A stretch of 64,000 nucleotides of DNA from Octopus sinensis (taxonomy: Eukaryota). Positions 5,655 through 53,068 of this stretch are shown piece after piece. Location: contig NW_021833450.1 in assembly GCF_006345805.1 (NCBI RefSeq), forward strand, positions 1 to 64,000, written 5' to 3'. The position numbers were made by a program, and so were the translations under genes. The notes below the pieces were generated by a model. The model did no database searches and had not been told where the DNA came from. It saw only the letters and a program-made list of their open reading frames with translations. Position 1 is the first letter of the stretch. The number at the start of each line of letters is the position of its first letter.

Positions 5655-5700
5655 ATGCATATAACACTTCTCTTTCTTAATCTTTTCGTCTTTAATGTTT
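5655..5700 (+). CDS. PAN gene A exon 1: signal peptide MHITLLFLNLFVFNV, phase-1 donor
   Basis: ATG at 5655, 15 hydrophobic codons + 1 nt, donor GTAAAT at 5701. The phase fits exon 2, and the exon is identical in the right arm. Confidence 0.75.
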
Positions 5701-6352
5701 GTAAATTAATGCTAAACGTGGACATGGAATATAAAATATTTTACAAAATAAATTTTCGTTGCAGTTCTCTTCTACATCTCATTGACATTTGGAAATGGAC
5801 GTGAGTAGATTTATATCAATATATAGACCTATATCTATAAACATTATAAAAATCACAGCGCAAAATTGTAATTTATAAGTTCAGTATAGGAAAATATTTT
5901 CCTTCTCAGAGTAAATTAGTTGAAAAGAAAATTTAAAATTCTAAGTTCAAGATAAAACCGCCGAATAATGACGAATTCAATTCTGAACATATTTTCATTC
6001 GTCGTCAGTGTTTCGTCAGTTTCTAAGCATTTTGTTAAATTTGACAAAGTGCTGATACTGGGGCAAACTTTACAATGCACAACCGCTGAACATTATAGAA
6101 CATAACATATGAGTCATTTAAATATGAGAATTAAACAACTTTAAAAACTCATATTTATTAAACAGATAATATATTCCAAGATGCCTTGTACCTACACTAT
6201 GGTAGTAACAACTTTATCACTTCTTCCTAGTAAACATACCGATGTTGATCGTCAAACATTTAATATTCTCTTTCTTTATATTATATATTTTCACAATATT
6301 TTATTTACGTCTTCCTATTTGGGTTGTTTAATTTGCCTGGCTTTTGTTACAG

Positions 6353-6610
6353 TTGAATATCTGACGTATTTTATAAAAGTACAACACTGTGATCTGAAAG
6401 ATGCTAAAACATTGATGACACTTGATGTGGATGACTTCAACTGTTCGAAGAATTGTTTTGAAACTTCTGCATGTAAATCCTTCGTGAGCAGAACGATAAG
6501 CCCAAGATGTATTTTATACGAAGATGACTCAACAGAGAAAATTCTAACAATGGAAAATAATGCCTATTTTTATCAGTTGAGAAGAACTGTGCCGACCAAG
6601 TATAGAGACG
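6353..6610 (+). CDS. PAN gene A exon 2: PAN/Apple-like domain 1
   Basis: ttttgttacAG acceptor, G|GTAAAC donor, 258 nt, phase 1-1. Encodes C-x3-C-x5-C-x-S-F...C-I-L-Y (CSKNCFETSACKSF...RCILY). Confidence 0.88.
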
Positions 6611-7399
6611 GTAAACAAATTTGAATCTTCTGGGTTTATTTTATTCCTTGACTTGTATTCTGTGTTTTAGTCCAAAGAGAGACAATACTGTCGGCATTTG
6701 AAAAGTCTCTACGATTTCTCTGGTCAATGTAGAATGGTGTCTGTGGATAAAAAATTGTTTGTAGAGTTTTCGTTTCAGAGAGTGAAAGTTCTAATAAAGG
6801 TTTGATTGATGCGCTTAGCATAGATTTTGGGATTGAGACACAAGATTACCAAGGAGAAAAGAGAAAAGGCAACGTTTTGTCAAAAGGTTGTGTGTTTAGG
6901 TTTTTGTCACGTGACTGTCAGTGAATATTCTCAATATCTTTGATGATGAAAATAATGCATGTCTGGGGTGTAATATCTAAATTGTGTGTAGATGACATTA
7001 GTCTGTGAGGGAGACGAAAAGATATCTTACACTATATGAGGATATGATACCAGTTTTACTTAAATTACGTAAAATAATTACAGAAGATTAACTGAATGTG
7101 TGAAACACAGATTTAATTTTTTTCACGTAGAAAATGAAGAAATTTGGAACCAAATTGGGTAACTCATCCATAAACGAATGAAAATCCTAAAACTGGATCA
7201 AATCAAAATATTCACAATTCTGATCACCTTTCTTTCTTTCTTCTTCTTCTTCTTTCTTTCTATCTTCTTCTTCTTCTTCTTCCATCTCTTTTCTCTCGCT
7301 TGCTTTATTTTTCAGATGAAAATCAAGCACGTTTATTATTTTGTAGTTCCCTGTGCGCCAAGCTTTCAGAGATGTGTTAGTAAGTTAGTCCGTCCGGAG

Positions 7400-49575: not shown

Positions 49576-51931
49576 TCACTCTGCCTGTATTAGTTCGAAA
49601 TAATGAGAATAAAATACGGGGAAGAAAAAGAAAAAAAGGGAAAAAGACGGGATCTGTCAGTTATTATTGTTATTACTATCACCTTCACCACCATCACCAT
49701 CATTAGCAACATCACCATCACCATCATCATCATCAATGATATTGTTTTATGTGTAGCCACAGCCACCATCAACACTCCTACTGCCATTGTGTGGGAGAAT
49801 GGTTGGTTAAAGAATTCATGCTATTTGGGTCTATAAATAGATTCGGCAGATGGTGGAGACAAAGGACGTTAATGGTCAGTAAAAGGTCAAACCTGTTTAC
49901 ATTTATTTATTTAATTTCCTTTTTCTTTTCTCTTTTCTTCCTCTTCACATGCATATGTATATGTATATGTATATTCACTCACACATATTATCTGATGTTT
50001 TCGTCGATGATTTTTTTTTTTTTTAAACTTTCTGAGTTCAATGTTATGTATATATTTTTAAATTTCTGAATTCAGTTGTATGTATATAGTAGTAGGTGCT
50101 TAATTCCATAACTTTTTATCGTGCATTTAATTGTGTTGTTACAATAAAAGGTAATTTAAAAGGCAATTTTACACATTCTTATAGTCATGAGAGACGACTA
50201 AATGTAAATGTTCACACAGAATTGGAGATATTTATGTTTCTAATTTTTCTTGTTAGGTGTACGTTTGTATGAGCTGTAGATATGTACGTTTTTAAACTTA
50301 TTTTGAGGGAAATTCAAATTACTCACAGAAAACAGTAGATCTTCCAGTTTTCTACGGTTGTTTTTTTCAGTTGTCCTGCTGGGTTCGCTGTTGCCAATAT
50401 TATTATTATTATTATTATTATTATTATTATTATTATATTATTATTATTATTATTATTATTATTATTATTATTATTAGCAGTAGTAGTAGATTTATTTCAT
50501 TTTCTAATTTTCTAATTGAAAGATATATGGGACCTCGAACTAAACTCATGCCATAGACTGAGTGGCTGCAACATTTGGAGCGCCGGAACGCAAGAGTCAC
50601 AGCAGGAAATATTGATGTTTGTTAACTTACAGAATAGGACGACGTGGCGATTGCTGGTGAACTTAATTCAATGAAAGTTTAATATTCACAAACAAGAAAA
50701 GACAAAAAGAAAACTAACAAGAATATTTTACTGCAAAATAAATGAATACACTTTCGAAATATTAAGTGAGATTTATGCGAAGGACATCATTGCTAGACAT
50801 AGCGGTTCTAAAGATATGTTTAACAGATCCCGATCAAAATACTGACAACAGCACACAAACAAACACACACTCAAACACGCACACACCCACGCACACACAC
50901 ACACACACACACACACACACACGCATACACATGCACGCGCACACACACGCACACACACTCGCACACACACACACACATTCTCTCTCTCTTACGCCTTCTC
51001 TCATTGAATCTGACTCGTACACGCAGACATGAAGATATTTTGTTTAAACTAAATAATTCTGTTTATTTTGAATTTAGTAATGGAGGCAACGAACCCAGCT
51101 TACAAACGAAAAATATTGTATATGAAGCGTTGGATTAGCAAAGTGTACGGCGTAGAACTAAAAAATAATAAATACAACGTGATTGATTTTCATCTGAAAC
51201 AATAAAGCAAGCGAGAGAAAAGAGATGGAAGGAAGAAAGAAAGAAAGAAAGAAAGAAAGAATGAAAGAAAGAAAGATAGAAAGAAAGAAAGATAGAAAGA
51301 AAGGTGATCAGAATTGTGAACAATTTTGATTTGATCCAGGTTGAGGATTTTCATTCGTTTATGGATGAGTTACCCAATTTGGTTCCAAATTTCTTCATTT
51401 TATACGTGAAAAAAATTAAATCTGTGTTTCACACATTCAGTTAATCTTCTGTAATTATTTTACGTAATTTAAGTAAAACTCGTATCATATCCTCATATAG
51501 TGTAAGATATCTTTTCGTCTCCCTCACAGACTAATGTCATCTACACACAATTTATATATTACACCCCAGACATGCATTATTTTCATCATCAAAGATATTG
51601 AGAATATTTACTGACAGTCACGTGACGAAAACGTTCTCTTTCACTGAACCTAAACACACAACCTTTTGACAAAACGTTGCCTTTTCTCTTTTCTCTTTGG
51701 TAATCTCGTGTCTCAATCCGAAATTCTGTGCTAAACGCATCAGTCAAACCTTTATTAGAACCACCACTCCGGAACAAAACTATACAATAATTCTTCAACA
51801 CACACCAATCTACATAGACTAGAGAAATCGCAGCAACTTTTCAAATGCTGACAGTATTGTCTCTCTTTAGACTAAAACATAGAATACAAGTGAAGGAATG
51901 AAATAAACCCAGAAGATTCAAATTTTTTTAC

Positions 51932-52189
51932 CGTCTGTATAATTGGTCGGCACAGATCTTCTCAACTGATAAAAATCGGTATTAGTTGCGCCTATTAGCA
52001 TTTTCTCTGTTGCGTCATCTTTGTATAAAATACAGCTTGGACTTATCGTTCTGCTCACGAAGGATTTACATGCAGAAGATTCAAAACACCTCTTCGAACA
52101 GTCGTAGGCATCCACATCAAGTGTCATCAATGTTTTACCTTCCTTGAGAAGACAGTTTCCTACTTTTATAAAATAGTTCAGATGTTCAA
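51932..52189 (-). CDS. PAN gene B exon 2: PAN/Apple-like domain 1
   Basis: ctttgttacAG acceptor and G|GTAAAA donor, 258 nt. Encodes CSKRCFESSACKSF...SCILY; paralogue of 6353-6610. Confidence 0.88.
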
Positions 52190-53022
52190 CTGTAACAAAG
52201 TCAGGAAAATTAAACAACCAAAGTACGAAGACGAAAATAAAAGATTTTCGAAATAGATAATATAAAGAGAGAGAATATTAAATGTTTGACGATCAATACT
52301 GATATTTTTACCAGGAAGAAGTGATAAATTTGTTACTACCATAATGTAGGGATAATTAATCCATTCTATTATTTAAATGATTCATATGATATGTTCTGTA
52401 ATGTTTTATGCTTGTGTATTGTAAAGTTTGCCCGATTATCAGAACTTAATTTTAATAAAATGCCTACAAACTGACGAAAAACTGAAATACAACGAGTACG
52501 AAGAGCTTACTTTCAGAACCACATCTATGCCTCTGAATGGCTTTTGAGTAATTGTTAATAGCAACAACTTGAATATATCTGATTTTGACTGGAATACTAA
52601 GATTCGCCTCCTGTCTATGTAACATCTATCCCAGTTTGACTGAAAAAAATTTCACGTGCGTGAAATTACAGATTGTATTTTAATGGTTATCATGAAACCG
52701 ACCAAAGATGCACTTATATTGGTTTTGAAAGTAACTCCTTATTATGTTAAGAATTGAATTCACCATCATACGGCTGTTTCGTATTGAACTAAAAATTATA
52801 AATTTTCTTTTCAACAAATTTATTTTGAGATGGAACATATTTTCCTATACTGAACTTATAAATTAAATTTTTGCATTCTGATTTTTCATAATTTTCATAG
52901 ATATTAATATAAATCTACTCACGTCCATTTCCAAATGTCAATGAGATGTAGAAGAGAACTGCAACGAAAATTTATTTTGTAAAATATTTTATATTCCATG
53001 TCCACGTTTAACATTAATTTAC

Positions 53023-53068
53023 AAACATTAAAGACGAAAAGATTAAGAAAGAGAAGTGTTATATGCAT
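53023..53068 (-). CDS. PAN gene B exon 1: signal peptide MHITLLFLNLFVFNV
   Basis: Identical 46-nt coding exon with GTAAAT donor on the minus strand. Confidence 0.75.

Follow-up and report, generated by a model that had tools for sequence, protein, structure and literature searches.

PAN/Apple domains are common, and elsewhere these modules bind proteins or glycans. The closest described relatives of the genes that we consider here are octopod proteins that were predicted to be "Apple domain-containing" (LOC118761543/LOC118761475, LOC118766713, and LOC118761179 from Octopus sinensis, LOC106868906 from O. bimaculoides, and Ahia01_000849900 from Argonauta hians), which belong to the same family. 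Our genes lie in the first 64 kb of VCDQ01005557.1, a 73.5-kb unplaced scaffold of O. sinensis. This 64-kb stretch, hereafter the window, is nuclear DNA, with an AT-rich eukaryotic composition and no Ns, and it contains two copies of the gene within a large inverted duplication: copy A on the plus strand and copy B on the minus strand. With a probability of roughly 0.75, copy B is an intact six-exon gene for a secreted protein of three PAN modules, and copy A is a damaged duplicate.

Copy B is 60% identical to the full-length octopod proteins, which have 276 to 282 amino acids. It shares their layout of six exons and their plan of 4+6+4 cysteines, and the exon boundaries in O. bimaculoides are the same as those in copy B. 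The locus is an uncharacterised member of an ordinary lineage-specific expansion.

Among proteins in the PDB, the best matches by both sequence (E = 0.0025) and structure (E = 6e-5 for SML-2) are SML-2 from Sarcocystis muris (2yil and 2yio) and MIC4 from Toxoplasma (4a5v). Like the predicted product of copy B, these are small secreted proteins that are built only of tandem PAN/Apple modules. However, they are just ~14% identical to copy B, they come from a different kingdom, and they have two or six modules instead of three. Galactose binding by SML-2 was shown in crystal complexes.

Two other groups of PAN/Apple proteins resemble copy B in single modules. First, module 2 of copy B has the same count of six cysteines as the Apple domains of factor XI and plasma prekallikrein, including a cysteine at both ends, and the Foldseek probability for these matches is ~1.0. 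Factor XI and prekallikrein have four Apple domains and a serine protease domain, though, while copy B has no protease, just four core cysteines in each of modules 1 and 3, and a longer spacing between the fifth and sixth cysteines of module 2. Second, the N-terminal PAN modules of plasminogen and HGF have the same core fold and the same C-x3-C-x5-C...C pattern, with a root-mean-square deviation of 2-3.5 Å over 76-87 columns for single modules. Plasminogen and HGF each have one PAN module, followed by kringles and a protease domain, whereas the modules of copy B stand alone and in tandem.

Copy B and its six exons

The coding exons of copy B span 55244-32329 (minus strand). In our revised model, six coding exons join into an 843-nt open reading frame that encodes 280 amino acids, including 16 cysteines, and all of the introns are GT-AG and in phase 1. 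The features are as follows (coordinates are positions in the window):

55214-55244, minus strand: coding part of exon 1, with the ATG at 55244; encodes MLERNCLQII plus 1 nt; donor GTATGT (found by regular-expression and peptide searches)
52923-52958, minus strand: exon 2, 36 nt; encodes FLFYISLTFGNG, which completes the signal peptide; acceptor ...ttgcag, donor GTGAGT; phase 1-1 (found by tblastn with homologues)
51932-52189, minus strand: exon 3; PAN module 1, with four core cysteines and the variable Cys35
38280-38510, minus strand: exon 4; core of PAN/Apple module 2, beginning with GKCP
33137-33232, minus strand: exon 5, 96 nt; encodes LWNDFRQSHTLEKINSVGCGVRVLDSYYFVE, with the conserved "GC" cysteine and the first strands of module 3; phase 1-1; boundaries AG/GTAAG
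32329-32519, minus strand: coding part of exon 6, including the stop; PAN module 3, with four cysteines
32208-32213, minus strand: AATAAA, 116 nt past the stop

We adopted this model because the N-termini of homologues, along with the exon that encodes LWND...GC (exon 5), map to canonical splice sites. All of the homologues that have an N-terminus read ML..Q.IFLFYISLTFGNG|LEYL, that is, ML..(Q).I-FLFYISLTFGNG-LEYL, and the peptide from exon 1 matches the N-termini of the database models P0003, P0010, P0012, and P0175. The sequence of exon 1 is unique in the window and lies outside the inverted repeat. Exon 5 is supported by tblastn with P0001, P0002, P0003, and P0007, and the reading frame of exon 6 is kept in O. 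bimaculoides and in the paralogues. The orthologue from O. bimaculoides (P0002, LOC106868906) has a matching layout of exons 1 to 6 within 10.9 kb.

Over residues 86-280, exons 3 to 6 of copy B are 100% identical, by tblastn, to P0001 (XP_036355264.1/XP_036355461.1), and exon 4 by itself is 100% identical as well. P0001 is NCBI's model for copy B (LOC118761543/LOC118761475): it is described as uncharacterized and partial, it has 195 amino acids, and it begins at an internal methionine. The range of its record on VCDQ01005557.1, which is 22329-62001 with flanks, is in the same coordinates as the window. A preliminary description of this DNA, made from the sequence alone, had called the genes hidden. 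This holds only in part, as copy B was already annotated, if incompletely. Our model replaces that partial database entry by a full protein of 280 amino acids that is predicted to be secreted.

The preliminary description also proposed that each copy has four exons, namely a 46-nt leader exon (5655-5700 on the plus strand, with its mirror at 53023-53068 on the minus strand) and three large exons. The large exons are present, with AG/GT boundaries and in phase 1, at 6353-6610, 13376-13603, and from 22402 onwards in copy A and at 52189-51932, 38510-38280, and 32519-32329 in copy B. They are exons 3, 4, and 6 of our model (numbered 2, 3, and 4 before). Joining the four proposed exons of copy B reproduces the expected protein of 241 amino acids with 14 cysteines, and AATAAA does lie about 100 nt past the stop in both copies. 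However, there are six coding exons and not four, and the extra exons give a different architecture. Exon 1 lies outside the range that was described. The 46-nt leader is intronic (it lies 65 nt upstream of exon 2 as mapped here) and is matched by none of the homologues; we rejected it because the N-termini of homologues map to other exons, so that the real leader is encoded by two small exons. Similarly, to join 13603 to 22402 (or their mirrors) as the sole architecture is to miss an intervening exon, of 96 nt in copy B and 87 nt in copy A, that encodes a conserved cysteine.

We considered whether the four-exon form might be a genuine isoform of copy B, which would start within intron 1 at 53068 with the leader MHITLLFLNLFVFNV, skip exon 5, and yield the protein of 241 amino acids and 14 cysteines. 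All of its junctions are canonical and in frame, its leader is hydrophobic, and both the open reading frame and the donor site of the leader are kept in O. bimaculoides. Skipping exon 5 preserves the frame and occurs in two of the family's models (P0005 and P0011). Nevertheless, this isoform is very unlikely. None of about 25 family models begins with a leader of the MHITLLFLNLFVFNV type, and the models that do have a leader all splice exon 2 to exon 3. The five differences between O. sinensis and O. bimaculoides in these 46 nt are all nonsynonymous, as expected for an intron. Also, the leader is highly similar between copies A and B, but no more so than the neighbouring noncoding DNA (99%).

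We also examined five other regions of the window that tblastn had suggested might contain additional exons of the family (8543-8911; 24447-24560 and 25208-25390 on the plus strand; 27549-27659 and 30870-31022 on the minus strand). These match the mis-predicted tails of paralogue models, and they contain stops. The last four regions are noncoding DNA past the two genes that resembles the odd C-terminal tails of P0005, P0006, and P0008, so these models probably read into common 3' flanking sequence.

Modules, cysteines, and predicted secretion of copy B

The protein encoded by copy B comprises a predicted signal peptide, a PAN module with four cysteines, an Apple-type module with six, and a C-terminal PAN module with four. 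On Pfam's PAN_1 (PF00024), which has a gathering score of 21.4 bits, the whole product reaches 61.6 bits, and modules 1, 2, and 3 each exceed this threshold when scored separately (29.5, 28.4, and 23.0 bits). The PAN_2 and PAN_4 profiles are over threshold too. In the scan that bears on the preliminary description, PAN_1 scored 54 bits across three stretches. Each module contains the core pattern C-x3-C-x5-C-x(9-12)-C (CSKRCFESSACKSFVSRTISPSC, CLYSCETKPNCQSFDYQIYTKKC, and CSRLCMVSSTCTAFSYTNTKC), and this pattern is conserved across the family. Copy B thus belongs to the PAN/Apple superfamily, and the preliminary description was right in that three PAN/Apple modules, preceded by a hydrophobic leader at the N-terminus, make up a small stand-alone protein; that observation and the PAN assignment are real and far beyond chance.

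Structure prediction agrees for modules 2 and 3. We used P0001, which corresponds to residues 86-280 of copy B, as the target for AlphaFold2, with an alignment of 15 sequences. The mean pLDDT (predicted local distance difference test score) was 68.5, with values of 66-89 in the cores of modules 2 and 3 and 77-89 in the core of module 2 (exon 4). In the model, both modules have strands and one helix, in a PAN/Apple-type alpha/beta fold, and the first strands of module 3 come from the second half of exon 5. When this model was compared to the PDB with Foldseek, the top matches were all PAN/Apple proteins: the galactose lectin SML-2, factor XI (FXI), prekallikrein, MIC4, plasminogen, and HGF. A profile search of PDB sequences found the SML-2 lectin, MIC4, and plasminogen.

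By inspection, the signal peptide looks cleavable: it reads MLERNCLQIIFLFYISLTFGNG, followed by LEH..., and the leader can be divided into MLERN, CLQIIFLFYISLTF, and GNG|LE. Its maximum Kyte-Doolittle hydropathy over 10 residues is 2.44. The leader is kept in paralogues, and the C-terminus of copy B is not hydrophobic. Because copy B has no membrane anchor, its product should be soluble and secreted.

Two cysteines that flank the core of module 2 are informative. The xCP cysteine, at the start of exon 4, and the GC cysteine in exon 5 occur together in all relatives whose sequences extend over them, among them distant octopods and Argonauta. In contrast, six relatives (P0002, P0005, P0018, P0025, P0045, and P0166) have alanine or threonine in place of the first cysteine of module 1, which is Cys35 in copy B. 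Going by this conservation, the family's cysteine plan is 4+6+4, and therefore the GKCP cysteine more likely opens module 2 than closes module 1, the role that the preliminary description had suggested. It would be the first cysteine of a six-cysteine Apple-type module 2 that is closed by the GC cysteine of exon 5; this pairing of the first and sixth cysteines is proposed from co-conservation and cysteine parity. Such a first and last pair is absent from modules 1 and 3.

By analogy to tandem-Apple lectins and other PAN proteins, copy B most likely encodes a secreted protein that binds glycans or proteins. The product would be secreted co-translationally and would fold as three PAN modules that are stabilised by disulfides. 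It might then act as a multivalent extracellular binder, with module 2, which is the most variable among paralogues, as the element that sets specificity.

Several points weigh against our reading of copy B. A collection of 15 billion sequences contains no exact match to any of the spliced proteins, the 280-amino-acid product included, and the splice junctions were all inferred by homology to models that are themselves predictions (from Gnomon or UniProt). The 5' end of copy B may differ from our model, because in P0169 (LOC118761516), which is the model for a near-identical paralogue, exon 1 is replaced by two other upstream exons that still join to exon 2. These exons are found in the window at 96-100% identity:

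57797-57862, minus strand: first alternative 5' exon of the P0169 type
53667-53717, minus strand: second alternative 5' exon of the P0169 type

Such exons point to a possible second promoter, located ~2.6 kb upstream of exon 1. The absence of exon 5 from P0005 and P0011 counts here as well: a form of copy B that skips exon 5, in frame and with the junction that was proposed originally, is possible. As for the fold, module 1 was modelled only in a full-length relative, with an alignment of 7 sequences, and that model was too poor to use (pLDDT of 39). The segment of exon 5 with the GC cysteine has pLDDT below 50, so the disulfide between the first and sixth cysteines of module 2 is putative. 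The mature protein would have 15 cysteines, which is an odd number; Cys35 may be free or may form an intermolecular bond. In factor XI, an unpaired cysteine permits covalent dimers, and this could apply to copy B. Finally, of the protein's properties, domain identity alone is demonstrated, with secretion, disulfide pairing, ligand, tissue, and biological role being inferred, and a search of the literature for octopus or cephalopod Apple/PAN proteins, or for these LOC identifiers, found nothing relevant.

The P0169-type exons also have a trace on the other arm of the duplication: the mirror of the second one is at 4998-5057 on the plus strand, with an indel.

Copy A and the inverted duplication

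Comparing the window to itself confirmed the large inverted gene duplication that had been reported:

~4719-26546: left arm of the inverted duplication
~54026-29728: right arm of the inverted duplication

The centre between the arms is unique and spans ~3.2 kb. The two gene copies are convergent, that is, they are arranged tail-to-tail, with 3' end facing 3' end. The O. bimaculoides orthologue has no convergent partner within 10 kb.

Exons 2 to 6 of copy A lie on the plus strand at 5765-22590:

5765-5800, plus strand: exon 2, identical to that of copy B (found by tblastn, with the boundaries checked)
6353-6610, plus strand: exon 3; PAN module 1; 86.8% nucleotide identity to copy B
13376-13603, plus strand: exon 4; core of PAN module 2; 74.6% nucleotide identity and 58% amino-acid identity to copy B
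21619-21705, plus strand: exon 5, 87 nt; nearest to the paralogue P0007 (93% amino-acid identity)
22402-22590, plus strand: exon 6, with two 1-nt deletions relative to copy B and the orthologues and an in-frame stop that ends at 22472
22693-22698, plus strand: AATAAA, 103 nt past the stop of the conserved frame

Although two copies of the gene are present, they are not equivalent: frameshifts disrupt copy A, for which the window contains no first exon. After the deletions in exon 6, module 3 can be read only in a different frame. We considered whether the frame of copy A's exon 6 (QPCNRCPMDAH...) might be ancestral, but O. bimaculoides and all of the paralogues have the frame of copy B, so this was ruled out. 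Exon 6 of copy A has an identical sequence, with both deletions, in another contig, VCDQ01003266.1 (L002). We looked for exon 1 of copy A in positions 1-5765 by using regular expressions, a DNA search that allowed 3 mismatches, and blastn with short words, and found just (TA)n matches. There was no counterpart of the copy A protein among the database proteins that we searched. Most likely, copy A is a pseudogene or decaying duplicate; at best, it would be a variant truncated to two modules. In other words, one of the two apparent genes is probably dead.

A functional copy A is possible but doubtful. Its first exon would lie beyond the left edge of the window, and its product would be secreted and shorter, consisting of two PAN modules and a tail of 22 amino acids. 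Exons 2 to 5 are open, with intact splice sites, and the poly(A) signal is retained. When copy A is compared to copy B, exons 4 and 5 have dN/dS ratios of 0.59 (dN of 0.29 and dS of 0.49) and 0.35, respectively, and therefore these exons were long under constraint. Also, VCDQ01003266.1 continues for ~23 kb further upstream, where a first exon could lie. On the other hand, exon 3 shows no sign of purifying selection (30 nonsynonymous and 4 synonymous differences between the copies), and the two frameshifts break a module that is conserved across the family. There is no homologue of exon 1 in the 5.7 kb upstream of exon 2, but the corresponding distance is just 2.3 kb in copy B and 1.5 kb in O. 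bimaculoides; instead, the upstream region has a fragment of a retroelement's reverse transcriptase. On this scaffold, NCBI's annotation includes copy B, and the databases that we searched did not contain a copy A protein.

Could the pair be an assembly artefact around one real gene, produced by a long read that is chimeric and palindromic or by collapsed haplotigs? The scaffold is unplaced, and at least four unplaced scaffolds of O. sinensis, including VCDQ01003266.1 and the contigs of P0169 and P0170, have identical or near-identical genes that resemble copy B, which shows that the assembly is redundant. This redundancy reflects either haplotigs in the assembly or a very recent segmental duplication. 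But divergence between the arms is a mosaic of 1-25%, which is unlike a palindrome artefact at the level of reads. Identity between the arms ranges from 75% to 99%: at the nucleotide level, copies A and B are 99% identical upstream of exon 2, 88-90% identical in the introns that flank exon 4, and 94% identical in exon 6. The proteins from exon 4 are just 58% identical, and intron sizes and retroelement insertions differ between the copies. Furthermore, the window and VCDQ01003266.1 share 99.7-99.9% identity across 22331-61998 (40 kb), and both the centre of the palindrome and the last exon of copy A recur there, at 99.9% identity. An artefact is thus extremely improbable, and we retain the reading of an intact copy B and a damaged copy A.

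Decayed copies of retroelements that bear reverse transcriptases account for much of the intron length in both gene copies:

1303-2022, plus strand: decayed RVT_1 open reading frame fragment, upstream of copy A
9732-10178, minus strand: decayed RVT_1 fragment in a long intron
40931-41524, minus strand: decayed RVT_1 fragment in a long intron
43551-44024, minus strand: decayed RVT_1 fragment in a long intron
46680-47906, minus strand: decayed RVT_1 fragment in a long intron
9776-12210 with 43172-45498: direct (not inverted) repeat with reverse-transcriptase fragments, 81-84% identical, in the equivalent intron of both copies

The direct orientation of this last repeat implies either independent insertions of one retroelement family after the duplication or a rearrangement. 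Two other features of the window are minor. Dense microsatellite tracts of the (TA)n or (TATG)n type, at 4386-4930, 53840-57500, and 61900-63300, lie at or beyond the outer ends of the duplication, and the homology between the arms ends within them. Strand composition is strongly skewed at 10001-14000 and 40001-50000, with AT skew reaching -0.44 and GC skew of -0.54 at 12-14 kb. The skewed stretches are located in introns and are probably low-complexity or retroelement-derived.

The octopod family and its variable middle module

A protein search with the 241-amino-acid model found only Octopus proteins, with P0001 as the best match; P0002, P0003, and P0012 were 60% identical over 99% of the query. 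In an exhaustive hidden Markov model (HMM) search of 1.84 billion representative sequences, there were 163 matches with E ≤ 1e-3 and 8 with E ≤ 1e-30. We examined 20 of the HMM matches. Fifteen, among them the closest, are from octopods (O. sinensis, O. bimaculoides, O. vulgaris, and A. hians), and these include all of the proteins with the same architecture, among the 20, as well as giant multi-Apple proteins. The first named match from outside the octopods is a multi-PAN protein from an annelid (E = 6.5e-20), and the other four have no source name. The result is a defined family of stand-alone triple PAN/Apple proteins, seen so far only in octopods, with 4+6+4 cysteines and a hypervariable middle module.

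As the best matches in the PDB were apicomplexan, we considered contamination by, or transfer from, a coccidian parasite. We rejected this explanation: the introns are on the scale of kilobases and contain fragments of reverse transcriptases, there are orthologues on Octopus chromosomes, and the annelid PAN protein scores far better than the apicomplexan ones.

Across copies A and B and nine database models (11 sequences in all), exon 4 is the most variable part at the amino-acid level: the mean pairwise identity is 0.46 for exon 4 versus 0.75 for exon 3. Between copies A and B, exon 4 is more diverged at the nucleotide level than the introns that flank it. Copy A is itself a mosaic. Its exons 3 and 5 match one paralogue, P0007 (94% and 93%), while its exon 4 matches none of them; the nearest is copy B, at just 58%. 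The mosaic of identities and the variable exon 4, as seen in these alignments, fit with exon-wise gene conversion and with a fast-evolving middle module.

A bolder interpretation is that the small triple-Apple genes form a fast-diversifying, octopod-restricted repertoire of secreted recognition proteins, with at least 15 loci in O. sinensis, in which a hypervariable central module sets specificity and the conserved outer PAN modules serve as a scaffold. Under this interpretation, symmetric phase-1 exons together with inverted or tandem duplicates would permit gene conversion exon by exon. The variability of exon 4 and the mosaic structure of copy A would be in keeping with such a repertoire; we view it as unlikely. 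If it were true, the repertoire would be a system like the variable lectins of invertebrates, for immunity, mucus, or other surface recognition, and the family would offer a useful way into extracellular recognition in cephalopods.

The family is large in O. sinensis, with at least 15 LOC entries. Several of these are on unplaced scaffolds, and some of those may be haplotigs.

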